64,000 nucleotides of DNA from Podarcis muralis (Eukaryota). This document shows positions 42,934 to 64,000 of the stretch, piece after piece; the stretch's first letter is position 1; each line of letters begins with the position of its first letter. The position numbers were made by a program, and so were the translations under genes. The notes below the pieces were generated by a model that was given only the letters and a program-made list of their open reading frames with translations, did no database searches and was not told the origin of the DNA. The stretch covers positions 101,742,001-101,806,000 of the forward strand of contig NC_135659.1 in NCBI RefSeq assembly GCF_964188315.1, in the 5' to 3' direction.

Positions 42934-43388
42934 GAGGCCGCCCCCCCCCCTCATGGGAGCTGCTTTCCATAAAATATTTTAATATTTTTATCACGTATTA
43001 ATATTTTTTACCACATTTGGTCACCCTATCATGGTGGACTTGGTTCAATGAAAGAGTTGCAGAGCTTTTAACATGGCAGGAGTGGGTGAGATGAAACAAA
43101 CAGTAAGGTGAGCAGGTAAAGGCAACTCAGGGAGCTTCTCCTTGCTGTCTCTCGTCACCTGCCCTGCAGCTCCAGGAGCCACGTTCTGCTCCCCGCCTGC
43201 TCTGTCTTTTCCAAAGAAGCAAGATGACCAGTGTCAAAGTGCTTTTACAATCAAGTAGTATATCGCTTTTGTGAAACGTAATCACCCTGGGTGTCGGAGG
43301 GGCTGGGAATGGGCAGCGCAGGGCCCCACTCTCTGCTCATGGCGCCCCTGTCCTGACAACCCTCTGCCTGCCAGATTTTACTGTTGCA

Positions 43389-43394
43389 AATAAA
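43389..43394 (+). terminator. Probable poly(A) signal of ZNFX1
   Basis: First AATAAA I noted after the stop codon (~455 nt). Confidence 0.5.
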
Positions 43395-45189
43395 TTTGTC
43401 ATAGCGGATCCCCCGTTGTGCTTCTGAGTGTCTTTTCTGTGGGAGGACGGCACCCTTCTGTGGGGGCCAGCAAAGGGCTTGTGTCCTGGACGATGCCAAA
43501 GGTCCCCTCTGGGTAGGGCCGGAGCTGCTCCTGGGAGGGTGCCTGTGCCCGTGGGGCTCTCCCGGTTTGCTCCTGGAGCCCCCATGAAGAATGCCCTGTA
43601 GCTGGAGAGGGGCAAGACGGGGCTGTGGCCACAAGGGCCTTTCACCAGCTTCACCTGCTGTGATAGCTACGGCCATAACTGGGTCAGGATTGCTTGCCCC
43701 CTCTAGGCCATTGCCTGGTAAACTTGAGGCGGGATTACTGCAATGGGTTCTCTGCAGTGCGGCCCTTGGGAGGGCGCAGAATTCAGGGGACAAAACCAGC
43801 AGTGTGTGACATATCTGTTAAACAACGCATCTGGGATGGCTGCTCACATGCTACTGCATCCTGACTCATGTGTATATGCAAACCTTGAGCAACTTGAGCT
43901 CTGGCACCTCAAACTCCATCACAGATCATGGTGGGGGGGAGAGCTGTCCATTGTCCCCCATGATCCAGAGGCCCGACTGGGATCCCCCGGAAGCCAGGCA
44001 TGTGGTGTCTCTGGACCACTGCTGGGAAACTCCCAAGAGAGATGCAGCAGGCACCCTCTCTTTGCACTTCCAGGCATCTCTCAAAGGCACTTTTTGTGCC
44101 ACTGTTTACTATGTATTTCGAACAGCCAGTTACCTATATTTTGGTTTCTGAAATGGCGTTTTATGTTTTAACATTGTAACAGGGAGCACCCCACAATCAC
44201 CTAACCTTGACTCTCTTAGGTTCAGGTCGGGGTCACACACAAGAGCCTTCAGCCAGGAGATAGAAGCAAAAAAGCAGCCAGAAGCCCTGATCAATGGGTT
44301 ACATCCGTATTCCAAAGTTTCCCATAATACAAGAAAATGTGTGGTCTCAGGTAGAACCTGAGATCCAGGCATGCCCCTGTCAATTGCAGTACAAAGGAAA
44401 GCATTTACAGTTTCCAGATCCCCGAATCAAGTCAAATACACCCCTTTGTCTTGATGGGGCTTCATCCCACTGTGGGGCAGGTAGGCATTGTGATTGAGAT
44501 GGTTATCTGTCTGACATTCTTGGGGCAGCATATCACCAATCATGACTCCTGCGGATGTGACTGTACATCTTGGGGATTATGGTGGGCTCTCTCACCCTTC
44601 CCCTAATACCTCACTTCCCTGGGTCCTAAATACCATTGGAACTGAGAAGATTGATGCAGCGAGTGATTTCTTGTGAATTTCTAAAGATTTCCCATTGTAC
44701 CCAGAAACATTTATCCGTGAATTGCTGCATTTGGTATTGACACTTGCCCTGTTGGAGACCTAGGGCTGGGCAGGGAGTCGCGGGCTCCTGAGCTGAGCTC
44801 CCCTATCACCTTGCAGATGCGATCCCTTTGCAGAGATGTTGCTGTTCTTTTCTCTTGACGCGAGGGGTGGAAGGCAGGGAAATGCCTGTGTGTGAGTGAA
44901 TGGTTTGGTGATGTGCAGCGGAGAGACTGTGGCTTTGCCTGGTGGTGTGGAGAGGCAAGGCTCCGGGGGGGGGGGGGAGTCTCTCACCCCCTTCCAATTT
45001 CCCGGGAACAACATGGTGCACCATCCAGATAAGAAGGCAGGGCAGCCTAGCAATACTTTCGCAGGCACAGAAGGGTAGAGCTGGGAGGGACCCCCGCCCG
45101 CCCGCCCGCCCGCGCATCTGCTCCCCGCTTTGCAATGCAGGAATCCCAAGGAAGGAGCCGCGCAGCGAAGGGCTCTGCTCGGCCGGGCG

Positions 45190-45832
45190 CACGTGGAGGC
45201 GACTGCGCATGCGCCCCTCCCCTCCCGCAACTGCCTCGGCGAAGAGACTTCCGGAAGTGGAGCCGCTCGGCGTCGAGGGTTGCGGTGGCGAGGCTTCTTC
45301 ACCCACAGCTCCGGTTCCCTGCCGCGGGATGTAGGAGCCGCCATGTGCGGGGCAGGAGCGAGGGGTCGCACGGAAGGCAGCCCGGCAGCCGCTTCCAGGA
45401 AAGGCCGGCTTGGCTCCATCGTGTGGCTCATGGAGAACATTCATCTATTAATATTATTATTATTATTATTATTATTCTACATACATGCATACCCCCAGCC
45501 ACTCTGGGCGGCTTCCAACCAAATATAAAAAATGCAGTAAACCCTCAGACATGCCAAACTTCCCTGACTTTCCAGAGCGCGGGGATGCGCGGCTGGGGCA
45601 GCATCACTCCCAGGCGGGGCGGGGCGAGGCTGCCAGGATCCCCCCTTCCCTCCCTTCCCTCCCTCGGTGCCAAAGGTCCCTTGGCAGGCGGGCTGCATTA
45701 AGCGAGGGGCCGGCGAGGGCGCCCTGGGCTCCAGCCGCGCGGCAGCTCGACCAGTTGCCTGCCTGCCTGGCGGGCGGCGGGGAGCCGGAAGTGCGGCGCT
45801 GCTCCTCTTGGGCGCGGGCTGCTGGGGCGGCG
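45190..45832. promoter_or_regulatory. CpG-island promoter region upstream of CCNDBP1
   Basis: NRF1-type TGCGCATGCGC (~45204), palindromic ETS ACTTCCGGAAGT (~45247-45258), second CCGGAAGTG (~45785). Island interrupted by a retroposon tail at ~45450-45560. Confidence 0.7.
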
Positions 45833-46499
45833 ATGGCGGCGTCTCCCGGGTCTCCGGCGGGGCTGCGTCGGGTGCGGGAGGCCCTGAGCGCGGCGCTGGG
45901 CGAGCTGCGAGGTGCGCGCGGCCTCCGGGGCGGGCGGGGGCGGGGCTTGGCGGCGCTCTGCAGGCGCTCAGAGGCACGCTTCTCTTTCAGGCGGCGAGAG
46001 CCGGGAGGGCGCCGGAGGCTTCGAGGCCGGGCGCTTCTGGGAGGCCCTGGGTAGGTGCCGCCTTCGCGGAGACCCCTCGGGGCGGGGGGGGGGGAGGCTG
46101 CAGGGACCCCCCCCGGGATGGGCTGCCCCCCTTGGCCAGGGGGGGGGCCTCCCCTCGACACTCCCCCCCCCCGCCTCACCCTCCCGCCCTTCTCCGCAGA
46201 GGAAGCCTTCCAGGCCGCCTCGCAGGAAGCCACCAAGCTGAGCCTGGCCTTCTCGAGACCCCCGCCGCCTTCCCTCCAGGTGGGTGAGACCCCGTCCCTC
46301 TTTCCCCCTCCCATCCGGGGCATCTCTCACGCGGCTTATTCCCTGCAAGATTTTTCTGCCGGGGGGGGGGAGGGTTCAGTGACATAGGAAGGGGGTGCGG
46401 TGGGTGCAGGCCGCCCACTAAGGGGGGGTGTGACAAAAGGGGGGCATGGGGCTAGGGGAGTCTGAATTAACCTGACAGTTAAAAATGCCACAGGGAATA

Positions 46500-46530
<31 letters not shown>

Positions 46531-49500
46531 GTGGTGGTGATGGTGATGGTGATGATGTTGCTGGGTTGCCCCAGCCACTCTGGGCAGCTTCCAGCAGAAG
46601 GTTAAAAATACATTGAAACATCAGTCATTAAAAACTTCCCTAAACAGGGAATCTGCCTTCAGACGTCTTCTAAATGTCACATCGTTTTTTATTCCCAAAA
46701 TGAATGCCGAACAGAACAACACTCTATATTCCTGGAATCACTCAAGAGCAAAGGCGTGGCGGGGGGGGGGGGGACACACTGGGTGCCACACCGCGGGGCC
46801 TGCAGCATGCCCAAGCCATGTGTCTCTCCTGGGGGTGACTTGGTGGCTGGGGCGCCTGCAGGCTCCACGCTGGGGCGGTCCGGGTGGCCAGGCTCCATGC
46901 AGCGGCCCTGCCCCAGCTCACCCCACCCAGTGGGTGGCTTGCCCTGCCCCTGGGCAGAGGGCGCATCCAGCGCTCCAGGCACCTAGCAGCTGGCGAGGCC
47001 GCTGGGGGGGGGCGGGTCCTTCATTTGATCCATTCTTTGCTTTAATTTCACAGGCTTCCAATAATTCTCCCTCGATGCTCCCCAATCTCTCCCCCCCCCA
47101 TCCTGCCCAGCCTAGTTGTCGGAGCCCAGGGCCCTTTTTGCGGGGTGGGGGGAGCTGCCTTGTGAGCCAGGTAACCTTTGGGTGCTGTCCCCTTGCAGGA
47201 GCAGGAGAGCCTGGCGGGAGGGGTGCACAGCGCTGTCCTGGCAGCCGCCTCCGTGTATTACCAGCTCCCCAAGGGCCAAGGTGAGCAAGATGGGGCCCCG
47301 CGAGGCAGGGACAAGGGGGTTCTCTGGGGGGCAGCGTGTGAGGAGCAGGCCAGGGGGCAGGCACTAGCTTGGGCTCCTGCACCTTGTGCTGGCGAGAAAA
47401 GAAGAGTCCGAGAATTGTAGGGTTGGAAGGGGCCCTCGAGGGTCATCCAGTCCAGCCCCTCCAGGGCAGGAATAAAAGACGGAGAGGTAGCAGGGGAGGC
47501 GTCTTCGCTTCTCTGAAGGGCTGCCCCATGGAAGAGGAAGCCGGCTGGTTTTCTCCAGCTCTAGAGGGCAGGACCCAAAGCAGTGGGTTCAGTTGACAAG
47601 AAAGGAGATTCCGACTCAGCATTCAGAAGACCTTTCTGACAGGAAGAGCTGTTGGGCAGTGGAGCCGTCTCTCATAGAATTGGAAGGGACCCTGAGGGTC
47701 ATCCAGTCCAACCCCCTGCAGCTGTCCCTTACGGGGATCGAACCTGCCACCTCGGCCTTCTCAGCACCAGGCAGCTGAGCTATCCAGCTCAGACTCGCCT
47801 TCCTTGGAGGCTTTGGAGCAGAGATGGATGTTGCGGGTTCTGTAGCCGAGATTCCTGCATTGCAGGGGGTTGGACTGGATGACCCTCAAGGTCCCTTCCA
47901 ACCAGAAGCCTGAGATTTTATGCGAGGTCTTGGGGGGGGGGGGCTGCCTGCAGTCTCTGTGCGTGAGTGCCAAGGAGGCAGGGCAGCGGTGATGGGGCTC
48001 TCTTTGCCCCCTGCAGGGACCACCCTGCGCAGAGCAGTGCGCGATGCCACCGTGCAGGTGGTGGAGGGGATGATTCAGCTGATTGACGTCATCCTTCGGA
48101 CCCCCCTGCAGAGGTGAGCTGCTGCTTCCCGCCCTCACCTGCCCAGGGAATGCTGGGGGGAGGCAGGAGGTCCAGGACGTCTCTCCCCAGAGAGTGGGGC
48201 AACCTCCTCTGCCGCCCCCGTGGGCCACAAAAGTGGAGGCCCCCCTGGGCCTGGGGCCCCCTCCTGACGCTTCTCCGCTCTCCCTTGCAGCCTCTCGCAG
48301 GAGCAGCTTGTCTCGACGGGAGGCGTCTGGGAGGCCTGCAGCCGAGTTTTCAGGATGCCTCGAGGTGAGTCAGGGGTCACCCCAGGGCAGCCTGGGGGCA
48401 GGGCGGGGCAGAGCGAGGGACGCCCCCCCGGGCGCTGCCATTGCTGCTTCCCCTTCTTGCCTTGCTCCTCCTCCCTTTCTTCTCTCCCCACAGATAACCA
48501 GGCGGCTGTGACCCTGGCCATTACCCAGGCTCTGGGGATTGTCAATGACGCACTGGAGGAGATGAAGCAGGTGCGCAGGGAGGGGGGCTGTCGGGGGGGG
48601 CTGTCTGCCGGCTTCACTTGCAAGAGAGCAGGGGGTATCACTATCCCTATTCTGCAACTGGAAAGCCTCTAAGTTTGAAGCATCAGACCAATGGGTTTAA
48701 GCACAACATTTAGGTATCCTGAAATTGCATTTGCCTTTTCAGACGCTGCGTCACACGGTGGGCTCAGGTCAGAATGCAGATTGCCGGAATGTAAAGTCTT
48801 CTGAAATTGGGGTGGGGGTGTTTGTGCAGGGGGAGTAAATGGGCTCATGCCTTTCACGAAAGCCATATTGACCCTTGACGGAGCACCTCATTCTTTCCTG
48901 TTACTGGGCCCAGATAGTAAAATCTGCCTGTTTCTTAGTCCAAGCCCCCCCCCCCCCATAATGCAGCCTGCTCAGCCCATACTTAAACCTGGCACTGCCC
49001 CCCCCCCCTCTGGATGTGCCAATCTCCCCTCTGCCTCTTCTGCTGTGTGGCTTCTGGGGGCAGATAAGGGCATTTGGCCGCCCCACGCAGGCTAGAGGCA
49101 GCCCCTCCAGATAAGGGCTCCTGCCTTGCCTGGGCTGCCCTGATAGAGCCCCCACCCCTGGGCTTCGCCCCTCTGCTCTGGGCTCTTAATAGCTTATGCA
49201 GCCGCCATGAAAAACTGGCTTGGCTTTCCTGTAAATCTGCTCTACTGAGATATGAAGGGTTGTCAGAGGGAGCCTTTGGCCTAATAGAGGTTTGGGGTTT
49301 TTTTACATTTCATTAATTGACAAAATAAACCAAAGATAAGGCGCATACAGAAATACTCAGCAAGCTGAACGCAGCATGAGGATGGGCGTTAGCACTGAAC
49401 TTGTTATTCCAGAATAACAGGTTTATGGGAGAAAGGGGTAAACTGCTTTATATGTGTTATTTTATACTAACTTGGCTTGATCATAGCTACTACTGTCCAA

Positions 49501-51587
49501 ATTTTCTCAACCCATTCAGATACAGAAGGAGATATAATAGCTAAAAGTTAGGGGGGGGGAGCATAATTAAGCAGCAGGTCCAAGGTGTCACACCGCTCCT
49601 TGATCTAGTAGGGTTTTGACTGGATTCCCTCTTGCGCTGCAGACCTGGGAGTCCCCAGATGCACTGTGGTTGCCTCCACCTCCCCCCCCCCCCCGCCTGC
49701 ATTGGGAGCTGCCAGGCAGCATTGCAGGGGGCTGGACTAGATGACACCTGGAGTCCCTTCCAACTCCACAATCCTATCAGTCTTATTTCCTCCCTCCTTG
49801 CTTGTAATGCCTGACTGGGGAGGTTAGCAACTTGGTGGCCCCCCTGGTATTCCCGTGACTGGGACGGTGGATGCCCACCCCCTTCCCTGCCTGGGGGGGG
49901 GGGCGGGATGAGAGTGTGACTGGCACGTCCCTTTCGCTCAGGCGCAGACTGAAGGTGGAGACCCGTACAGTGATGTCCTGGAGGATGAGGACTTGGGCTC
50001 CCGGGCAAACAGGGACACTTACTGGTCAGCGGCTGACCGGCAGCTGCTTGGCCCCTGCCTGGGGCTGGTGAAGGCCGCCAAGATTTGCCTGAAGAGGGTC
50101 CAGGGGGCCGTCAGAGGCCGCGGAAGGACCGACAAGGCTGAGCAGCTGGCACAGTTAGACGACCTGGCCGACATTGCAGGAGACGTCAGCCCCAGGTGAG
50201 GCAGCCGGGGGAGCCTTGGGGGGATTGCTGTGGCCTAGGGGGTGGGCCAGGGCAGCAAGACCAGTCCCAACGCCCTCCCTGCAGGGTTGCTCCACTCTGT
50301 CCTTGGAAAGGCCCCCCCCCCAAGAGGGTTGCATGAGCCTGAGGAAGGGGGCGCCCAGGAGCCTTGCAGCCGAGTCCAGCGCATGCTGTGCTCCCTCAGG
50401 CTGCCTCTCTTTTGGGTTGGGGGCTGGGGGGGGGCAGGAAACGGCAAGGCACCCTCCCCTGACCCCTCCTCCCTTCCTGTTTTATTCTGCAGTGTGGACG
50501 AGTTGGTGCTGAGCACCTACCCCCCTGTGAACCAGCTGGCTCTGCGGCTGAATGTGAGTTGCCCATTGGGGCCGATGAAGCTTTTTAGGGGAAGCCTCTG
50601 GTCCTCTGCAGCTTTTGGGAGATCCTATTTCCCCACTTCAGCCCATGAGGGTGGGGGGCCTGGGACCCCCAAGATGCCTGCGGGAGAGAAGACTGTGCGA
50701 GCGGAGAGTTGCCCCTGGGGCTGTGGGGGCCTCTCCTGCCCCCTGGATGCCCCGTGGCAGATCGCCCTTCCCTTCCTCCTCTACCAAGCTGGGCTCCCCT
50801 TCCCTTCTCGGCCCTCGGCAAAGGCAGCCGTGTCTCTCTTGCGCAGAAATGGAGGAAGCTGTCGCTGAACCAAGGACGGCCCACGCTGTCTGGCCAGGGA
50901 GTCTCTGCGGTTTGAGGCCAGAGGGCCTCTTCCCCAGCCCTGCGTGGAGGTGCTGCTGGTCCTCCTCCCTGAGTTGGGACAGCCCTTCCCTCTGTTCAGG
51001 GGTGAAAGGTCAAGGCTGTGTCCGAGGGGCCGTACGGTGCCAGCCAGGGAGTGCCAAAGGGAGAAGCCCTTTTAAGAAGGCCTCACACTTGCCTGCCGGA
51101 CCTTGTGGCCAGCGGACCAGAAACCACCTGCTCCTGTTGGACTGTTTGTTTTCCTAGAAAAGGTGAAGTTCCAGGAGCGGCGGCTCTGGGCTTGACGTCT
51201 TGTTTCTTTCTAGGCTGCAAAGTTGGCGTCTGTGCTAAAGAAGATGTTGGAACTGACCAGGTGAGCAGGGCAGCCTCTCCTCTGTCTCTGCCACTTCCGC
51301 CTGGGGGGGGGGGCGGGCAGAGGGGCACAGCTGGTGGGTAAACGGTTTCCGTCTTAAAGACATAGCCAGCCTTTTGCTGCAGTGCAATCGCCCTCGATGC
51401 TGGGACTGGGGGCCTTGTCAGGGTGGCCCCCCATCGCTCACCTGCATCTCTCTCTTTCCCTCTCTTCTCCCTCCCCAGCGCCAGCTTTGTCTGCCCTCCG
51501 TCGGAAGAGAACTGGGTGCAGTTCCTGGCCGGGGCAGTTGACCACAACATGGACAAAATCAAAGAGCTCACCCAAGGGCTCCTTTGA
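45833..51587 (+). CDS. CCNDBP1: Cyclin-D1-binding protein 1 (GCIP), 11 coding exons, 339 aa
   Basis: Exons 45833-45911, 45991-46050, 46200-46279, 47199-47280, 48017-48113, 48291-48364, 48494-48570, 49942-50195, 50493-50553, 51214-51260, 51479-51587 sum to 1020 nt. Motifs VYYQLPKGQGTTLR, DTYWS, SPSVDELVLSTYPP, AVDHNMDKIKELTQ match recalled CCNDBP1. Confidence 0.93.
46498..46690 (-). mobile_element. L2-like 3-prime tail with (GAT/GGT)n microsatellite
   Basis: CCCAGCCACTCTGGGCRGCTTCCA motif also at ~4520, ~31485 and ~45495, most with a simple-repeat tail. Confidence 0.6.
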
Positions 51588-52073: not shown

Positions 52074-52079
52074 TTTAAT
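52074..52079 (-). terminator. Probable poly(A) signal of EPB42
   Basis: ATTAAA on the minus strand ~42 nt after the stop codon. Confidence 0.55.
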
Positions 52080-52120: not shown

Positions 52121-55100
52121 CTAAGCTGCTGCCCCCACCTGGATGGTCCTGCAGGCCTTGAGGGGCTGGAGCAGGGGGCTCTCTACCTGCACTGTCAGCC
52201 TCCGGGGCCCGGCCTGGGTCGGCGTGAAGGGGATCCTCAGCGCTGTGCTGCTGCCAGCTGGGATGTCTCCAAGCCTGCAGAGAGGAGGAGGAGAGGGGGC
52301 TGTTAGGGGCAGAAGGGGGTCGCCAGCTCTCCTGAGGAGGGGCAGCTCAGGAGGAGGATGGAGCAAGCTGGTTTTCTCCTGCTCCAGATGGATTCACGGA
52401 ATCAGAATGGTCGACTGGCAAGGGGCACCAAGGGGCACCTCGGGCCGGACTCAAGTTCCAAGACAGGAGATTCCATGTCAACACCAGGAAGACCTTTGGA
52501 CAGGAGGACCTGTTGGATGGTGGAAGGGACTCCCTGGGGAGGTGGGGGGGGGCTCTCCTTCCTGGGAGGTTTCTGAGCAGAGGCTGGATGGCCAGCTGTC
52601 AGGGATGCTTGAGCGGAGATTTCTGCATTGCAGGGGGCTGGACTAGATGGCCCTCGGGGTCCCTTCCAACTCTACAATTCAACGATTCTAAGAGCAGCTC
52701 CTCACCTTCCCCCCCCCCAGCCTATAAACACCACCCCGCCGTCTGTTATCAGAGGTGCCAAGCAGGTGAATCCAGCTGGCACCTCAGCAGAGAGCCCTTC
52801 CCCCTCAATCCTGGCAGACAAGAGGGGCTGGGCTGGCACAGTCCCACCCCCTCCCACCTCCACTTGCTCTGATCCAGCCGTGGGGAGTGTGTGCCTTTGC
52901 GTTCACCTGGAATGCCAGGGAGCCTTCTCTCCTTCATGGAGAGGGCTTGATCCCCCCAGCCCAAAGAAAGCAACCCTGCCCAGGAGTGCCCTTCACCTGT
53001 AGCTCCTGGTCTTGTGGATGAGTCCCCAGCCTGACACGGAGACGAGGCAGCCTGGGAGGGCCTCCGGGAGGGGGTTGTGGAGCTGGATCTCGGCTTGGGT
53101 GGCCTGGAACTGGGCTGTGCGCTCAGGGACCTGAGAAAGCAGGACAATGGCAGCACAGGGACTGGGGGGGTCTGGGGGGCAGGGGTGGGCTGAAGCCATA
53201 GACCCACTGGGCTTGCTAATGGGGAGGGGGCAGGGCTCTACCCAGCCTGCTTTGCTGTGGCACCCCAAGTCTGAAGAAACAAGGACCTCCTCCTCCCCTT
53301 GAAGGGCTCACAGTCAGGAAAGGGGACTGGGGGCTCACTCCCCAAAAAACAGGCATTGGAGGAGGCCTTTCTTGAGATACTGTGGTGCAACAGCTAGAGT
53401 TGCTCCAGGACCTGGAAGAGACCAGGGTTCAAAGGCCTACTCAGCCATGAAGCTCCCTGGGTCACCTTGGGCCAATCACTGTTCCTCAGCCGAACCTACC
53501 TCACAGGGCGGTTGTGCAGATAAAGTGGGGAGGAAGAACCCGGTGTACCACCGTGAGCTCCGGGGGTGGGGTATGAAAGTAGTTGATTTTTCTCTGCTCT
53601 GCCTTCATGTGTTAGTGGGGCTCAGCTGTGTCTGTGCAGTTAGCTGGAGAAACGGGGGGGGGGGTGTTGCTCTGGCCTCCCACTGACCTGGATGTTGAGT
53701 CCGGGGGCACAGAAGTGGATTTCCTGCCAGGCCAGGTGGTTGCTATGGGAGGCCGTGTCTCTCAGCAGCGCCGTCAGCTTCAGCAAGAGGGAGTTGTTGC
53801 GCAGGGCTGGGCCGTATTCTGCGTAAGGCAGTGTGGTGCTCAGGGCTTCCTCTGGAAAACAAGGCAGGGGGGCTCAGGGAGATTCACAGAGGGCACCCAA
53901 GGACTTGTCCATCACAGGCTGTGATGCCTCTGCAAGGAACCCGGCACGCTTGGACTAGATGGGAGGGGTGTTTGCAGGATGCATCCTCCTCCTGAGCCAG
54001 ACCAATGGCCCATCTAGCCCTACAGGGTCAGCACTGGCTGCAGGGCACTTTCTCTACCCAGAGGTGCCAAAGGGGCTAGATGCCCCTTTGGACCCCTTCC
54101 AGCTCTCTGGTTCTCTGTGTAGGAGAGTAGCAGCCAATCTTAACAAAAGCCTCTTATTTCTAAACAAATTATATGACAAATTACAGATAGGTAGCCGTGT
54201 TGGTCTGCCATAGTCAAAACAAAAAAAATTCCTTCCAGTAGCACCTTAAAGACCAACTAAGTTAGTTCTTGGTATGAGCTTTCGTGTGCATGCACACTTC
54301 TTCAGATACACAGAAGTGTACATGCACACGAAAGCTCATACCAAGAACTAACTTAGTTGGTCTTTAAGGTGCTACTGGAAGGAATTTTTTTTGTTTTGAC
54401 TATGGCAGACCAACACGGCTACCTATCTGTAACTCTTATTTCTAGTTAGCATAAGAAGGGGTTAAGACCACAGAGACTCAGACCATAGAAATACATTTGG
54501 TAGAGAGGGCTCTGTGTGATGTCACTTCCCCTCATCTCTCTTCCTTTGACCAGCCAAGAGGGCAGACATGCCCTTTATCTGCTCCAGCTCAGGCAGATGC
54601 CAGAAGCTGATTATACTGTAAACGGAAGTATTTTGCTTGCATAGCTTTTGCTGCTACTGTTGAGGTTAACCAATGCAGGATTTTAAGTAAATTCTATTTT
54701 TAAACTTACTTCCCAGGCTGTTCCCAGATTCTTTGTTAAATCAGGGTAAGAAAGGGAGAGCCAGCTTACTTCATAGTTGGATTTAGCCTAATTCCCGTGC
54801 TTTTAATTTTGCTGCCAAGGATGGGATTTTGAGAAACTGTTCAGCCCACACATGTGGGCGCCTGAAGAGATAAATTGCAATCAGCAAATCCTCCCCAGCA
54901 AGCTTACCGTGCCCGCTGGGGAGAGTGAAGTGATACTCCTCCTTCCAGAACTGTGGCAGGGCCTTGCCATCATACTGCAGTGGCTGGGCACCCAGAACCA
55001 GTGCCAGGCTCTTCTCCTCCCCAGTCCGGTTCACCACCAACACGGAGACTGGGGCGTCTTGCCCCAACGGCCAGGAGCTCTTGGCCTGGATGTGGGCGAA

Positions 55101-58100
55101 GAGGAGAGGTTCTGTGTCGTCTTCCTGGGCCGGAGGGGCGAGTGGAGGCTGAGGGGGGCAGCTGTCCCCCTCAATCTGGGCTTGGAGCCGCTCCTGTTCG
55201 TGAGAGACCTTGCTCAGCACAGCCCTCTCTGCAGCAGACCCTGCAAAAAACCCAGAAGCCATTTCCACTTTGCTCCTCAGGGAAGCAGGTGATAAATTTC
55301 CTCCTTGACTGGCTGAGAATGGGGGGGGGGGGGGGGCCGGGGTCAGAGATTTAGAGCCCACCCCAGGATGGGGGGGCCAAGCAGAAAGCAAGAGCTCACC
55401 TGCCCCGCTTACCTTCCGGGTGCTTGTAGTGTTGTGTGAGGTCCTCGCACCGGTCGCTGCCCACTGCCTTGGTGCTGAGGTTGTTGCCCACGAACTTCGT
55501 GGAGGAAAAGGCACGCTGGAAGTCGCCGTTGTCCTGTCGCACCCAGGCAGCGCAGGTGGCATTGGTGGCTGCGAAGAAGGTGGCGACGTCGTAGGGCAGG
55601 TCCAGACGACCTTCCTTGATGGCCCGGACAGGGGCTGGCCCGCAAAACGAGGAGTCTGGAGAGGAAGGGGAGGACGACAATTGGGGTAGGGGTGGCCCCT
55701 TTGGCCCAAGGTACCCCTGTTTTAGCCTCTGGTGGTGGTCCAAGCAGAAGCCCCCCTCTGGCTTGTGGAGGTGGAGGCGAGGGGGCTACACAGTGTGGCT
55801 AAAAGGGCAAGCTAGTCAGAATCACGGCAGACCTGTAGAGAAGGGTACCCCAACGGTCATCTAGTCCAACCCCCTGCAATGCAATGATCCCACCTAAGGA
55901 ATCCCTGACAGATGGCCTCTTTCCCATCAATCACCCCCCTCTAGGGGGAAGCTGCTCCCCCATCCCGCTCTCTCCATATTGTGGCTGGGGGTCAATGCCA
56001 GTGTCCCTTGAGCCCCCCACCCGCCCGTGGGACCTACAGCTGCCCTCTTCCTGAGGCGTGGCATCCACGGCTTGCCATCCGTCGTAGCCGGGGGGCAGAT
56101 CCCGACGGGCCATCCAGCACTCGTTCCAGGCGTGGAAAGGCCTGCGGGAGACGCGGAGGGAATGTCTTAGGGGTGGGGCCGTCTTGGGGGACCCCGAAGC
56201 CCGTCCGTCTCCCCACTCCAGTATTCCGGCGCCTCACCAGACGGCAGCCTCGGAGAGGCCGGGGATCAGGGCGGCGCTCTCGTCGAAGTATTCGTCCACG
56301 CGCAGGCGGCCGGCCGTGTCTTGGGCGGAGGCGAAGCTGGTGACCACGCGGGTGGGGATGCCCAGGCTCCGCAGCACTGCAGAGAGAGGGGCAGCGGGAG
56401 CTGGGCGGCGAGAGGGCTCCCGGGGGAAGGGACCCCCAGGGCCATCCAGTCCCACCCCCTTCCGTGCAGGAATCACAACCCTTTAGCCTTAGGGAACGGC
56501 AGGTTCGCCCACGCCCCGTTAGGAGGGCGACATTTACACCGGCTCCCTCGACACTAAACCCCTTTCAGCAGGAGGGGGTCCAGTTCCTCAGAGCTAGCAG
56601 AGTAGGCATGGTGGGGGGCAACCATCTCAGGCAGCAGGGGCCCCTTCCTCGCCTGGGGCCCATCCCTGAACAGGACCCTGTACCTGTGCACAGGACCCCC
56701 GCGAAGACCCAACACTGCCCGTAGCGGACAGGCTGCCCTCGCGCTGCCAGCCACCGGCGCAGGATGGGGGCGCTGCCCGGCCACTGGAAAGGGGACGTCC
56801 CGTCGCTGTAGTCCCCGGTCCAGCCACCCTCCAGGATCGCTTGGTGCGTCTTGCTGTTCAGCTGGAGTGGGGGTGGGGAGAGAAAAGTGAGCAGCACCAG
56901 GAGAAAGCCCCCCCCCCCAACATAACAAGGTAGAGTTAGAAGGGATTGTGGGAATTCACAGTCGAAATAACGTTGCAGGTATGAAAGGGTTAAGACTCCG
57001 AGTTCCTCCTGCCTCAGGACTCTTCTCTTTTCCGCGCTGCTTCCGAGGCAGCCAGACATCTATGGAGACTTCCTTTTTAACTCTGCATTTTGCAAGGAGC
57101 ATTTTCCTTCTTTTTGTTACTGTTGCTGCTGGAGTGGAACGCGAGACGTATGCACGTAAATGCTGTTTTCACGCTTGGTCTACAGTCTGCTGTGTTATTC
57201 TTTTCATTAAGAGGGAAAAGGGGGAAATCCAGACTGTTCCCCCAGCCTGGAAGAATGGCAATAAGGCTACACAGCCGAGTCCCGAAGTTTCCACTTTAGT
57301 GCTGCAAAGGGTGGGGTTTGGAACTCTGCTAACTAATTGTTTTAACTTTAAACGTTCTGCTCACACATGTGAGTAATAGCGAGGATAAATTGTAAAACAT
57401 ATCCGACCCGCTGCCTATCAAAAAATATCCAGCAGGACCCCCAAGGGTCATCGAGTCCACCCCCCCCTGCAAGGCAGGAATGGCAGCTAAATGCACCCCG
57501 TGGCCAGCAGGGGGCGCTACCGGCCCGGCCCGGTCCCGAGGGTTCCTGAGCATGTGCAGCTGCTTCCCCTAAGCCGGCAGGGTCTGCGGGCGACTCTGCC
57601 TCCTGCTCACCTACCATGGAGCTGACCAGGCGGCAGACGTGGAGAGGGTCGCTGCGCTGGGCGCAGGGCGCGTCCTGCAACCAGAAGAGGCCGATGGCCG
57701 GCAGGGCCAGGCTGAGGTCCACGATGTCCTCTTGGAACTGAAAAGGGAGGCGGAGAATTGAAGGCTGGAGGATGGGGGTCCCCCGACCATCCCGACCCCT
57801 CCGCTCCGCGCGCGCCTTCCGCAGCAGTAAGGAGCAGCCCCGCACGTGGACGGGGCGGCCATCTCCCTGCAGGTGCGGCCGCCCACCTGGCCCAAACCGG
57901 CCAGGCGCAGCCGACCCCTGGGCTGAGCGGGGATGGGTCTCTCGCTCACCTGGCCGTAATCCCAGGGCTGCTGCTGGGGCGCCTCCTCCAGCCCCCAGTA
58001 AACGGTGCCCTCCTCATTGCACACGTATTCCTGGCGCTGCGCCTCGTTGGGCAGGAAGACGCTGTCCTCTGCGGGAGACGGGCCGTCAGGGGGGCGGCAG

Positions 58101-60447
58101 CACAGCCTGGGGAGGGGCTGCTCTGGTTGGCAGGGGTCCCCCTGCGCCGCCCCCTCCCGGCAGCAGACCTTCCGACCCCACCCACTGCCCTCTTGGCTCC
58201 GGCATCCTGGCCTTGGTTGGCACCGACGCGTCTTGCCTACCTTGGCACCAGGGGTTGAAGAGGAGCGTGAAGGTGCCCAGCGGGCGCGGAGCCCCTCGGC
58301 CATGCTGCAGCAGGAGGGAGTATCGGCCGATGACGGCGTCGGCGGGCGAAGTCACGGTCAGCGTCCAAGAGAGGCTCTCGGGGGCGTCCACGAAAGCCTG
58401 CCAGCCGCTCTGGCGGCCCTGGCGGGAGATGGGGAAGCGCACCAGGGACCCGTCCTTCTGGGATGGCCGCTGCCCTGCAGCCAGAAACGCGAGATGGCCC
58501 AAAGGGGACGCAAGGCAGCGAGGGGCGGGGGACAGGTCTGCTGGAGGGGCTGGCTGGAGAAAGGAACGGGGGCGCAGGTAGGCAAGAGAGGGGCCACGAG
58601 GCCCTGCGGGGGTCTCTGAGTTCTCCTCGACAGTCCTGTCAGACGGGGGTGGACGGCGAGCCTCCGCAGGGCCAAATTCAGGGCTTCATTCAGGGCAAAC
58701 TGATTTTAACCGGGGTGTAAAAACATCTAGTGCAAACATATGACACACCTCCCAGCTGTTTTAGGAGACGGTGCTACACAATTACTTTTCTGCATTCCTT
58801 CCGAGAAGGGCATTCTAGCTCTGGGGGAGAGTTAGTTGCTTTGCAAGCAGAAGGTCCCGGGTTCAAATCCTGACAGCATCTCCAAGTGGGGCTGGCTCCC
58901 ACCCCCCCACCCGCTGAACGCGCTGAAGGATCGCTGGCAAGCAGTCTAGAAAATCCTAAGCGAGGTGGCCCAGGGCCCTGACCTCATAATCGTAGCGTTG
59001 GAAGGGACCCGAGAGTCATCTAGCTTCCTGAAAACGGGTCCATGGGCGTGTCCTCCCTGTCCCCACCCCCGGCTGGGGCACTGCTGCTGGCGAAGGTGCA
59101 AGTCCCGCCCCTCGTGTGCCCAGCAAAGCGGACCCACTTTACAGGACCGCTGAAATGATTGAGAAAGTTAATGGGACGCTCTCAATTGTTCATCTCGCCT
59201 TCATCTCTGACCCGCCTTACTTTTTTGGAGGGGTTGTAATTTCCTCCAGGCGCCGCGCAAACTTAGCTGCCGCTCCTTTTCTCCCCTGTGATGCTTAACT
59301 CCCCCCTCCCGCTCTGCTCTGCAACTGCAGACGGTGCGTCTCCTGGTGGGCTCCCGCCGCTTCTGCCAGCCGGCAACCACCCCCCTCCCAGCCGGAGGAG
59401 CGCGAGAGGCGCGCCGGGGCTCCTGGTGCGGCGGGGCCGTCGGGGAGCCGCGGGTCTTCGGCCTCCGGATCTTCCGGAGCTTACCCGTCTGAGCGACCAG
59501 GCAGGTCTTGCGCAGGTACCTCCGGGGGGCTCCGGGCAGCGGCTCTCGGAAGTGGAGGGTGAGCGCAAAGGGCTGCCCGCGCCGCACCACCAGGCGCTCG
59601 GTGCTGACGGCCGCCGTGCGGTGCGCCGCGTTGTTCCTCGACGGCTGCAAGTCGCATCTCGACACCTGCAGGGCTGCGGGGCGGGAGGGGGGCGGGCGGT
59701 GAGGGGGCAGGCGGCACGCAGGGCGGGGTCGGGGGTCGCTTCCGCTCCCCTCCCGCTCTTCTGGCAAAGGAACGAGGGCGCAGGTAGGCAAGAGAGGGGC
59801 CACGAGGCCCTGCGGGGGTCTTTGAGGCCGGCGTCTGGACAGTAGTGACTGACCGCCCGACTGCGGCAGCCAGGAATGTCCCTCTCTCCCCTGAAAGGCG
59901 CTTAGGGGGCTGCTCACGACCCCTGAGAAGTGGGACTCTGCTGAGGGTGCTGAGGTCTGTTTGGAATGGCGGGGGGGAGCCATGTTGCAAAAGTGCGCGG
60001 GAGGGGGGTCCTGCCTGACGCCGCTGGGTGTGACAGAGCAACGCACACGCCGCACGTGAGAACGGGGCTGGTCCCCGAACTCCTCCTGGTCACTGAGGTT
60101 GCTGCCCAAAGCTCTGCTCCTGCTCTTGGCTGTAGAGGAGTCCTTTCGACAGGGCCGCTCTCGTCAGCCCTGCTCTTTTGGCTCCCCTCCCACTCCCCCC
60201 GCTTTAGCCGGGCCTAAACGCCCCCCCCCCCTTGAGACGCACCCAGCTTGCACCCAGCACCCTCGCCCCGCTTCGTGGCTCCCTGCCGGCCTCCTTCCTA
60301 CAAGGCCAGGGGCTCCCGCCCGCCTGGCCGGCCTCCGTTGCGCCGCGCTGTGATGCTGCGCCGAGGAGCCTAGCAGACGCCTCTGGGATGGCACCGGGTT
60401 TGGACCGCTTGGCAGTGCCCAGGGAGTCCCCGCTCACCTTGGCCCAT
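52121..60447 (-). CDS. EPB42: Erythrocyte membrane protein 4.2 orthologue (transglutaminase family), 13 exons, 707 aa, catalytic triad intact
   Basis: Exons 60438-60447, 59485-59673, 58241-58474, 57950-58068, 57615-57737, 56684-56861, 56238-56376, 56038-56141, 55413-55655, 54908-55240, 53688-53851, 52997-53130, 52121-52274 sum to 2124 nt. 10-nt MGQ first exon, [28 protein letters not shown] and [10 protein letters not shown] resemble protein 4.2. Position between CCNDBP1 and TGM5 matches human; GATA/E-box promoter. Confidence 0.88.
52365..52692 (+). mobile_element. CR1-type LINE 3-prime fragment
   Basis: GGACTAGATGGCCCTCGGGGTCCCTTCCAACTCTAC...GATTCT terminus. Shorter pieces at ~1150, 1990, 29640, 31860, 35720, 36160, 47410-47910, 49690, 55840, 61660-61830. 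Confidence 0.7.
53370..53580 (+). mobile_element. Diverged Sauria-type SINE
   Basis: GGGTTCAAA B-box-like motif, GGGTCACCTTGGGCCAATCAC, ACCTACCTCACAGGG core. Confidence 0.6.
54163..54432. mobile_element. Palindromic Penelope-like element remnant in EPB42 intron 10
   Basis: Arms 54181-54301 and 54312-54432 (121 bp, 1 mismatch), 10-nt spacer. Flanked by a 12-bp direct repeat CTCTTATTTCTA (54151-54162, 54433-54444). Contains a PLE-type hammerhead motif. Confidence 0.75.
54272..54309 (-). ncRNA. Minimal type I hammerhead ribozyme motif
   Basis: Minus strand GTAT-CTGAAGA-A-GTGTG-CATG-CACAC-GAA-AGCT-C-ATAC: stem I GTAT/ATAC, core CUGANGA...GAAA, stem II, palindromic AGCU stem III, CUC cleavage triplet. 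Confidence 0.7.
54447..54880. mobile_element. LTR/DIRS-like terminal-repeat fragment, copy 1
   Basis: Extended similarity to 62410-62785 (GACCATAGAAATACA...GGGCTCTGTGTGATG...GTATTTTGCTTGCATAGCTT...GCTGCCAAGGATGGGATTTTGA...CATGTGGGCGCCTG). Weaker relative at ~56935-57400. Class assignment is inference. Confidence 0.5.
58560..58620. repeat. 61-bp dispersed direct repeat, copy A (EPB42 intron 2)
   Basis: 59/61 identical to 59766-59826. Confidence 0.9.
59766..59826. repeat. 61-bp dispersed direct repeat, copy B (EPB42 intron 1)
   Basis: 59/61 identical to 58560-58620. Confidence 0.9.
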
Positions 60448-60600
60448 GGCGCTTTGCGGGCCGCGGGCTCCGTCCCTTCCTCCTCTTGCCTCGGGCTGGC
60501 GGCGGGCGGGCGGGCGGGCGGGCGGGCGGTCGGGGCCGAGGATGGCGAGGCTGCCTCTGCCGGGCACGTCGGGTGGGGCCCCCTCGCCTCTCCCGGGCTC

Positions 60601-60644
60601 CTTATCAGGCTGGCGTCACCTGCCGCCCTTATCTCTGCCACGTG
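60601..60644 (-). promoter_or_regulatory. Erythroid-type GATA / E-box composite upstream of EPB42
   Basis: On the minus strand: CAGGTG-N9-TGATAAG (60601-60622), AGATAAG (60628-60634), CACGTG (60639-60644); 150-200 bp upstream of the ATG. Confidence 0.65.
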
Positions 60645-61332: not shown

Positions 61333-61910
61333 TCAGTCCCTGCGACACCTCCATCCCGAGCGGGGGGCCACTTGCAGCTGCTTGTGGCCCTTGACTGGGG
61401 GGAACTGGCTGCTCTTGAGTGTGACGTGCAGCTGCCGGGGGCCGCTCTTGTAGGGCGTCAGCTGGAGCCGGATGCTGGTCTGCTTCCGGGGGCCCAGGGG
61501 CCCCAACCTGCAAAGAGAAGAAGAGCCTGGCAGGGAGGTGGCCAAAGGGACGGCACACTTTCCTTTCTTACCTGCTGTGAGGCAGTGATGAGCCCCAAAT
61601 GGGCGGGGGGGGGAAGGGGGGGCACTTACAGTGCCAAGGAGGCATAAACCATAGCAGCGTAAAGCTGGAATGGAACCCAAGAGTCATCTAGTCCAACCCC
61701 CTGAAGTGGAGAAAACAAATAAATCATCTGTCATCAAGGATGCTTCAGTTGAGATTCCTGAATTGCAGGGGGTTGGACTAGATGACCCTCAGGGGTCCCT
61801 TCCAACTCTACAGTTCTATGATTCTGTCCCTGACAGGTGGCCATCCAACCTCTTGACCAAAGAGAAGGAAGATATATGGAGGCCCCTGTGGGAGAGGGTC
61901 TTCCTCACCT

Positions 61911-61951
<41 letters not shown>

Positions 61952-63912
61952 CCTTCACCCCCTTCACGACAATATACAGCATTTCCCTCCCTGACTGGCA
62001 ACAAAGGCCTTGGCCCCCAATGCTACGCTCCTGTAAATCAGAAAGGAGGCTAAATCTTCCAGTTTGTATGGTTGCTTATTCCTTTTTTTCTAAAGACTCT
62101 TTAGGCACCTATTTTCCTGCTTGTAGGTCTCCCTGCTGTTTGTAGTTCCAGGTGCCAGAGAGGCAACTGAATGTGTTGCTGGGCCCCTGACTTCCAGGGA
62201 TGCTCCTGCTCAGAAATGGCTCCAGGGCCACGTGCAGATTCACTCACACATGGAGCAGGGGGAGGATCCTGCCCCAATCATCCTTTGGCCGGCACTTCCT
62301 CCAGGAGATCAAGCCCTGGGAGTGGAAGCCTCCCCGCAAGGGGGTAGCAGCCAAACCTAACAATGCCTGAGAAGGAGCTAAGACCACCGAGATGTATTGC
62401 TGACCGGCAGAGACGCAGACCATAGAAATACAATGGGTAGAGAGGGCTCTGTGTGATGCCATTTCCCCTCCTCTCTAGGAGAGGGAGGAGCATAGAGTAC
62501 TTCCTCTTCCTCCCTCTTCCTTTGACCACAAAGAGGGCAGATGTCGCCTGTGCCAGGCAGATGCCAGCTGGTTATACTGTAAATGTAAGTATTTTGCTTG
62601 CATAGCTTCTATTACTGCTGTTGCTGTGATCCAGTGCATGGCTATAAAGTAAGTAAGTCTTATTTTACTTCCTTCCCAAGTTGCTGCCTGAACAAAGTTT
62701 TACAGTTTGTGATTTTAAATTTTGCTGCCAAGGATGGGATTTTGAAACCCCACGCATGTGGGCGCCTGGAGGGATGACTTGCAAGCAGCCTTCCTGCCCC
62801 CCTGCCCCCTTACTCACTGTATCTGGGGCTGGCCCTTCACCAGCCCACTGCCTTCCATGGTCAAGACGCAGTTGCCCACGGGCTCCGAAAGGGGGTTGGC
62901 AAACACCACCTGGATCGGGAAGGGCTGGTTCACCACCACGGAGGCCAACACCTGTGCCAGGGACCAAGCGGTTAGGAGCAGAAGGGAGGGGGGCTCTTTG
63001 GGACAGGGGCCCACCCCCCAGCCCTCTCTTTGCCTGGCCTGAAACTTGGGCGGTGGGGGGGGGCAAGCTTGTTCCCCACTTTGAAGAAGGCTGGGATGTT
63101 TCTTGCTGAGCCTGCATGGCTTTAGCCCACCCAAACCACATCGGAGGGAGGCAGGTGGGTCGCAAGGTGTGTGCCGGGGGGGGGGGGGGGGGAGCCGCTC
63201 CTTTGCCCCCAGGAACAGAGCCTTTGGAAACCCTGCACTCGACCCCACAGTAGCGAGCAGCCCCCTATCCCCCCCCCGCCCCCCGCCAACCCAGAGGCGA
63301 TGTGCCTACGTGGATGTCCAGGCTGGGGCTGGCCATGGTGATGGTTTTCTCTGCCAGGGTCTTCAGCCAGGTGGTGTTCTCCTCGCCCAGCACGATGACG
63401 CGAAGCTGCTTATCCTCTCCCAGCTGCTGCCCGTACTGCTGGTAGGAGATGGTCCAGGGAAGCTCCTTCTCTGCAAAGAGGCCCGTGTCAGAGGCGGGCG
63501 GCTCTCCTTCACCCGGAGACAGCGCCTCGGGAGGCCTGCCCGCTCCCCCTCCCGCTCGCCTTACCTTCCCTGGGGCGGAGGGAGAGGTACAGGGTCTCCT
63601 GCCAGAAGGGCGGCCGCGGGTGGCCATCGTGCAGCACGGCCTGGGCGCTGAGGCTCAGCTTGAGCTCCTTGTGGACAAACTCCAGGTTGCAGGCCGCCAG
63701 CACCAGCTGGATGTCCTGGCCCACCTCAGGACTCTCCACAAGCTGGAGCTTCAGAGAGGTCTGGGCCATGGCCGGCGGCGGCTCCCGGGTCCTGTCCTCC
63801 ACAGAGGCAGAGAACGCAACCGGAAGGACTCCCGACCTGTATCGCACTGGGGGGCTGAGCGGCTGCCTCTGGCCGAGGGCCTTCAGGAACACACGGCGCT
63901 CTGCCAGGGAGC
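61333..63912 (-). CDS. TGM5: Transglutaminase 5-like, last four exons only (gene continues beyond window)
   Basis: Exons 63565-63912, 63310-63470, 62818-62951, 61333-61507 with consistent phases. [47 protein letters not shown] resemble TGM5 beta-barrels more than TGM7. Catalytic core lies outside the window, so paralogue assignment is tentative. Confidence 0.7.
61910..61948. repeat. (CT)n dinucleotide repeat
   Basis: Read directly from the sequence. Confidence 0.95.
62410..62785. mobile_element. LTR/DIRS-like terminal-repeat fragment, copy 2
   Basis: Colinear similarity to 54447-54880. Confidence 0.5.
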
Positions 63913-64000
63913 CTGTGGGGAGCAAGGAAGGACAAGGCAAGGCCAGTGAGTGCACGAGGTGAGGCACCCCCCCCCCCCCCGGGTCCGGAGCTTGGCTAAG

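Follow-up and report, generated by a model that had tools for sequence, protein, structure and literature searches.

Protein 4.2 (EPB42) of the lizard Podarcis muralis: a complete transglutaminase triad beside a degraded calcium switch

EPB42, the gene of protein 4.2, is a textbook example of an enzyme converted into a scaffold. A 64,000-nucleotide stretch of Podarcis muralis DNA (contig NC_135659.1, positions 101,742,001 to 101,806,000; hereafter the window, to which all positions refer) raises the question of how far this conversion has gone in lizards. The original prediction on this DNA described an EPB42 orthologue with an intact catalytic triad, and proposed that it may be an active, membrane-anchored transglutaminase of nucleated red cells. 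The analysis reported here leads to another answer, held with modest confidence: the P. muralis protein is probably an erythroid scaffold carrying an ancestral triad, and not a calcium-switched cross-linking enzyme.

The gene is located on the minus strand of the window, which has no runs of N. A Sceloporus protein 4.2-like sequence, found by using exon 9 as query, was aligned to the window, and splice sites were then read directly. The resulting model features 13 exons (60447-52121), separated by introns that are all of the GT-AG type, and an open reading frame of 707 amino acids. The interval 56038-56861, on which the original prediction was centred, coincides exactly with exons 6, 7 and 8. 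The spliced product is identical over all residues to RefSeq XP_028591569.2, denominated "protein 4.2-like isoform X2" [Podarcis muralis], and the coding sequence is the same in assembly GCA_964188315.1. The gene is already annotated in RefSeq. It is intact and expressed, and a chance match of motifs is ruled out.

The Cys-His-Asp triad is complete in P. muralis, and is formed by Cys275, His334 and Asp357. Every peptide quoted in the original prediction was found on the minus strand where it had been placed. Exon 6 (56684-56861, 178 nucleotides) encodes both GGWTGDY (56828-56808), in which Trp239 (56822-56820) is the counterpart of W241 of transglutaminase TG2, and YGQCWVF (56723-56703), in which the Cys275 codon TGT spans 56714-56712. 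HAWNE (56134-56120; His334 at 56134-56132) and AVDATPQ (56071-56051; Asp357 at 56065-56063) are encoded by exon 8 (56038-56141, 104 nucleotides), along with Thr359 and Glu362, which are also kept. The second active-site tunnel tryptophan, Trp331 of the motif WPFHAWNE, equivalent to TG2 W332, is created by splicing of exon 7 to exon 8, as the first two bases of the codon (TG, 56239-56238) derive from the former and the last (G, 56141) from the latter. The transition-state tryptophan region is intact, as had been claimed. Mutants W241A and W332A of TG2 have no detectable activity (PMC2140088).

Assignment of the gene to EPB42 was checked by a maximum-likelihood tree (LG+C20+F+G4) of 46 sequences. 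The only amniote paralogues in the tree were TGM5 of koala and TGM2 of a bird, both named as such, and one turtle transglutaminase without a gene name; TGM7, TGM3 and TGM6 entered as amphibian and fish sequences. Support is 100/99 for the EPB42 clade, 100/99 for an amniote subclade that includes opossum protein 4.2 and platypus, and 100/100 for squamate EPB42, with the window protein nested among lacertids at 100/100. Archosaurs and squamates follow the species tree within the EPB42 clade, and named TGM5, TGM2 and TGM3/6-like sequences fall outside. Among solved structures, the best full-length match is human protein 4.2 (595 bits), followed by TG2 (493) and TG3 (407). The gene lies between a TGM5-like gene and CCNDBP1, the latter on the opposite strand and followed by ZNFX1, and the order TGM5-like, EPB42, CCNDBP1 is found also in Zootoca, Lacerta and Elgaria. 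EPB42 of squamates, alligator, caecilian and opossum has the amino terminus MGQAL, which TGM2 and TGM5 lack. Tree, gene order, amino terminus and structural match all identify the gene as the EPB42 orthologue of P. muralis, so that both the orthology and the CCNDBP1-TGM5 position of the original prediction are confirmed. A lineage-specific duplicate of TGM5/TGM7 type, sitting beside TGM5, could be suspected from one Podarcis raffonei isoform named TGM5-like, and from exon 6, which taken alone matches human protein 4.2 more weakly than any other transglutaminase of known structure (34 bits, against 60-64 for TG2 and a fish enzyme). The latter result is to be expected, because the active site has diverged in human protein 4.2. 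Such a paralogue was rejected, and is hardly credible, given the position inside EPB42 with a topology like that of the species tree, the full-length match to human protein 4.2, the MGQAL terminus and a location flanked in four lizards by the TGM5-like gene and CCNDBP1.

Is a complete triad sufficient to make this protein an enzyme? The step from intact triad to active enzyme, as originally stated, leaves out the calcium sites. In TG2, calcium at site S3 (D306, N308, N310, E329) is required for thioester formation, S2 is dispensable, and the change E329A alone leaves barely detectable activity (PMC11252922). In the alignment, the four S3 columns are occupied in P. muralis by Asp304, Ala306, Arg308 and Ala328, and at least two of the four ligands are lost. 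All these residues are encoded by exon 7 (56238-56376, 139 nucleotides). Glu327 immediately precedes the E329 column in P. muralis, and is replaced by Ala in Zootoca (E327A); Lacerta carries the change D304N. S3 positions hence vary among lacertids, whereas catalytic motifs are invariant. Arg308 is specific to lacertids, as Elgaria has Asn and Sceloporus Ser at this place. Of site S1 (in TG2, the side chain of N229, and D233), the Asn is kept, and the Asp position is taken by Thr, beside a one-residue gap. The Asn and the two Glu of S2 are kept, with Thr at the position of TG2 D400. Finally, Gln303 substitutes for TG2 His305, and Glu362, the equivalent of TG2 E363, is maintained. Judged from these alignments, the calcium-activation apparatus of working transglutaminases is degraded in P. 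muralis EPB42, and the state of S3, which is essential in TG2 (PMC11252922), counts against the inference of an active enzyme.

Gln303 is the last residue of FASAQ (56335-56321), a motif regarded in the original prediction as a hallmark of EPB42. It does not serve as such, since archosaurs and amphibians have the usual SAH or WAH at this place.

The E329 column hosts Ala in all the sauropsids sampled, and Ser in mammals. In Ambystoma mexicanum, the EPB42 protein, annotated as TGM5-like and falling in the EPB42 clade, has every ligand of S1, S2 and S3 along with the triad and the two tryptophans, and is therefore the likeliest EPB42 to be genuinely active. These states suggest decay of the calcium switch early in the history of amniotes, with separate losses of the triad coming later.

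These losses were monitored by reading the key columns in 129 aligned sequences. The full set (W239, C275, W276, W331, H334 and D357) is found in Podarcis, Elgaria, Sceloporus, alligator, Rhinatrema and three salamanders, and all five lacertids carry it unchanged. The triad has been lost in other squamates, Cys being replaced by Ser in Anolis, and Cys by Gly and His by Arg in Pogona. The two losses, both among iguanian lizards, are separate, and Sceloporus retains the Cys. Outside squamates, losses are found in frogs (Cys to His), in Geotrypetes (His to Arg), in mammals, and in the sunbittern (Eurypyga) and kagu (Rhynochetos), which share a Cys to Arg change. The sample shows at least six independent losses. 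In the survey of sauropsids and amphibians that the original prediction had called for, the triad is retained in several members of both groups, and its Cys is gone in Anolis and Pogona. The catalytic Cys is lost in two of five squamate families, and catalysis is therefore dispensable in squamates.

Birds keep Cys, His and Asp, but feature Gly or Glu at the column of the oxyanion/tunnel Trp, equivalent to W241, in 95 of 103 sequences. Conservation of the triad in these 103 sequences was evaluated as a sign of specific selection, and was rejected as such, because conservation reaches 97% or more in 49% of core columns, which are as conserved as the triad. Since about half of the core behaves in this way, retention of the triad is by itself weak evidence. 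In lacertids, the ratio of nonsynonymous to synonymous substitution rates (dN/dS) amounts to 0.25-0.34 over the entire length, with its minimum in the core (0.18-0.24). These values indicate that the protein is functional, without singling out catalysis. The neighbouring TGM5-like gene was tried as a control, but its dN/dS of 0.19-0.66, obtained over only 81-114 shared codons, is too noisy for use. The 120 top-ranking relatives of a lizard EPB42 included none from a snake, gecko or turtle, which may reflect gene loss, strong divergence, or only the extent of the list.

By analogy with mammals, the lizard protein would work mainly as mammalian protein 4.2 does, as a scaffold of the erythroid membrane skeleton that is held by a lipid anchor at the N-terminus. 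In this view the triad would represent the ancestral state, maintained either because the structure requires it or because a weak, non-canonical chemistry persists. Conversion into a pseudoenzyme would have been stepwise: erosion of the calcium switch would have come first, in amniotes, followed by independent losses of the triad in several lineages. The inference of an active enzyme is possible but weakened, and activity of the protein is doubtful.

Lizard EPB42 could still be what the original prediction had in mind, a working, membrane-anchored transglutaminase that cross-links or deamidates proteins of the membrane skeleton in nucleated red cells, and so preserves the ancestral enzyme state. 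The intactness of triad, tunnel tryptophans, Thr359 and Glu362 throughout lacertids, a core dN/dS of about 0.2, and the fact that the sole difference found in the Cys codon is silent all speak for it, as does the Ambystoma orthologue, with every catalytic and calcium-site residue in place, which makes an active ancestor probable. The same suggestion has been made in two published studies (PMC3535377, PMC11152450). We nevertheless consider this reading possible rather than probable. At least two of the four ligands have disappeared from S3, a site required for the thioester in TG2, and what is left of it drifts within lacertids; His305 has become Gln and the S1 Asp has become Thr; Anolis and Pogona have independently dispensed with the catalytic Cys; and in birds about half of the core columns are conserved as strongly as the triad.

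A lacertid EPB42 that is a working lipid-anchored erythroid transglutaminase free of the canonical S3 switch, for example constitutively open or regulated otherwise, is improbable. If real, it would provide a vertebrate transglutaminase that is naturally independent of calcium, and an intermediate, still living, towards the mammalian pseudoenzyme. Improbable, too, is a partial enzyme, in which the Cys-His-Asp centre would form and hydrolyse the thioester in the manner of a deamidase or isopeptidase, perhaps without calcium, and would not cross-link. TG2 mutants at H305 and E363 lose transamidation and keep deamidation (PMC11252922), and the lizard has Gln at the H305 position. Arg308, placed where a calcium ligand is expected, could in principle stand in for the cation, which is speculation; it is confined to lacertids, however, the corresponding residue being Asn in Elgaria and Ser in Sceloporus, and in TG2 the thioester step itself needs occupancy of S3.

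Several points weigh against an erythroid scaffold with an ancestral triad. The full catalytic set, invariant in the five lacertids and kept in Elgaria, Sceloporus and alligator, includes the oxyanion Trp that birds have lost, and the core is the most constrained domain; both would fit a retained chemistry. S2 is intact, with its Asn and two Glu. The argument built on S3 is transferred to EPB42 from TG2 mutants, by analogy. Squamates have retained an acidic residue adjacent to the E329 column, where the alignment is not certain because the Glu lies beside a loop of variable length. The consensus for myristoylation is incompletely matched, since Gln6 is outside the preferred residues. Lastly, erythroid expression of the lizard gene is deduced from promoter motifs and orthology, because the tissue of the RNA runs is given as a code.

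The two latter points concern the N-terminus and the promoter. Exon 1 (60438-60447, ATGGGCCAAG) encodes only Met-Gly-Gln and the first base of Ala4, in line with the MGQ exon of the original prediction, and its junction with exon 2 (59673/60438) is found in RNA. Gly2 is a candidate myristoylation site, and residue 6 is Gln. The PROSITE myristoylation pattern prefers Ser, Thr, Ala, Gly, Cys or Asn at residue 6. An erythroid-type promoter module is located on the minus strand at 60571-60634, 125-187 bp upstream of the ATG. It is made by AGATAA (60634-60629), the composite element CAGGTG-N10-GATAA (60622-60602) and CACCC (60575-60571); relative to the ATG, AGATAA is at -187, CAGGTG at -175, TGATAA at -160 and CACCC at -128. 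Both GATA and E-box sites had been anticipated upstream of the gene, and both are there. Mammalian EPB42 promoters host E-box-GATA elements bound by the TAL1/LDB1/GATA1 complex. The composite element occurs once in the 64 kb window (60602-60622), against 0.24 occurrences expected for the window as a whole. Conservation of the module extends to Zootoca and Lacerta. In Elgaria there is an invariant upstream AGATAA and, shifted in place, a second GATA, but the E-box has been lost. A (CCCG)n run is interposed between module and ATG (about 60470-60505), and is longer in P. muralis than in Zootoca and Lacerta.

Transcription was analysed in two stranded bulk RNA-seq runs bearing the same species label, over a stretch that covered eight junctions of exons 1-9. 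Seven of the eight junctions (exons 1/2, 2/3, 4/5, 5/6, 6/7, 7/8 and 8/9) are found in RNA exactly at the modelled positions, and nearly all reads share one orientation. The exon 3/4 junction is not among the RNA junctions listed, yet the RefSeq model and three other lizards have the identical junction. In a single-cell RNA run, no read supporting an exon junction was found over the stretch with exons 1-9, where reads map only to an intronic repeat (55738-55906) and, in small number, at about 58.8-59.1 kb. The repeat, located in intron 8, is an interspersed element on which RNA and contigs pile up to very high depth, on both strands, and the loose ends of its reads run on into many other sequences. 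An assembled contig of one RNA run joins exon 1 directly to exon 9 (55655 to 60438), skipping exons 2-8, and represents either an aberrant isoform of rare occurrence or an artefact of assembly.

Ten exonic differences distinguish the animals used for RNA-seq from the reference. Nine are silent, among which the Cys275 codon, TGC in place of TGT, and the other is V114A. Between its two RefSeq versions, the P. muralis protein varies at seven amino acids (V114A, Q440H, S456N, A467D, C474S, P542A and A636P). This is a sizeable within-species variation of the protein, and none of it involves catalytic positions.

How much of this was already known? Thomas et al. in 2011 noted that avian band 4.2 contains the triad and "may function as active enzyme", and that band 4.2 diverges fast (PMC3535377). 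Sachslehner et al. in 2024 reported that the catalytic residues of EPB42 are conserved in some amphibians and sauropsids and in no mammal, and proposed that EPB42 was originally active; their Fig. S9 displays the triad in chicken, alligator and caecilian, the only lizard, Anolis, having YGQSW (PMC11152450). Retention of the triad outside mammals and the idea of an active ancestor were therefore in print, which removes the novelty, as the original prediction had itself stated for such a case. With the gene annotated and the concept published, little is novel and the finding itself is modest; the sole new element is the presence of the Cys in lacertids, in contrast to Anolis. Lizards with a full catalytic set beside close relatives without it (Anolis, Pogona) offer a natural comparison for timing the loss of activity. 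A useful addition is that the triad alone misleads, as S3 is eroded across the amniote EPB42 proteins sampled (squamates, alligator, birds, opossum and platypus). Given this erosion, and the lack of the oxyanion Trp in birds, the published suggestion of an active sauropsid EPB42 needs a biochemical test; no assay of any non-mammalian EPB42 was found in the searchable literature.

Compared with known systems, the lizard gene is closest to that of mammalian protein 4.2, of which it is the orthologue. The latter, known in human from the ankyrin-1 complex (7TVZ chain E), similarly has 13 exons, the first consisting of MGQ plus one base, adjoins CCNDBP1 and TGM5, and has a GATA/E-box promoter. Identity of the lizard protein to opossum protein 4.2 is 43%. 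Gly2 is conserved, and is myristoylated in human protein 4.2 (bioRxiv 10.1101/2022.02.10.480008). Human protein 4.2 differs in having Ala268, Gln327 and His350 at the triad positions, filled in the lizard by Cys275, His334 and Asp357 and accompanied by both tunnel tryptophans. The triad-keeping EPB42 proteins of chicken, alligator and caecilian belong to the same orthologue group and have Cys, His and Asp in common with the lizard. Anolis EPB42 is distinguished by its Cys to Ser change from lacertids, Elgaria and Sceloporus, which keep the Cys, and bird EPB42 by lacking the Trp equivalent to W241, which lizards and alligator maintain. Tryptophans and calcium sites, considered here, were outside the scope of the two earlier studies (PMC3535377, PMC11152450). 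The active enzymes of the TGM2 clade (TG2, TG3, TG5 and TG6) share with the lizard protein the fold, the Pfam domains, 38-40% identity, the triad, the tunnel tryptophans, the equivalents of Thr360 and Glu363 and the S2 ligands. They differ at S3, where the lizard has replaced ligands (Ala306, Arg308, Ala328), at S1, where Asp is Thr, and at His305, which is Gln.

The remaining exons, all on the minus strand, flank the catalytic region on both sides. Exon 2 (59485-59673, 189 nucleotides) encodes the beta-sandwich at the N-terminus, and has RNA junctions at both ends. It is followed by exon 3 (58241-58474, 234 nucleotides), whose junction with exon 2 is found in RNA, and by exons 4 (57950-58068, 119 nucleotides) and 5 (57615-57737, 123 nucleotides), both derived from model and RNA. 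The junctions of exon 8 are likewise found in RNA. Exon 9 (55413-55655, 243 nucleotides), also supported by RNA, encodes the end of the catalytic core, including Asn397 of calcium site S2, and exon 10 (54908-55240, 333 nucleotides) the linker and beta-barrel 1. Exons 11 (53688-53851, 164 nucleotides) and 12 (52997-53130, 134 nucleotides) precede exon 13 (52121-52274, 154 coding nucleotides), which ends with the stop codon TAG at 52123-52121; an ATTAAA sequence is found at 52079.

Upstream of EPB42, the last exons of the TGM5-like transglutaminase gene, which has a product of 738 amino acids, occupy positions 61333-64000 on the minus strand. CCNDBP1 (45590-51587, plus strand) is convergent with EPB42, and encodes a product of 433 amino acids with GCIP_N and GCIP_C domains. 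ZNFX1, which extends from 42933 downward, comes after CCNDBP1, and the two genes directly follow one another (42933-51587). CCNDBP1 and ZNFX1 are located on human chromosomes 15 and 20, respectively, so that two human synteny blocks are joined at the lizard locus. About 0.4 Mb separate the locus from the end of a chromosome record of 102.2 Mb.

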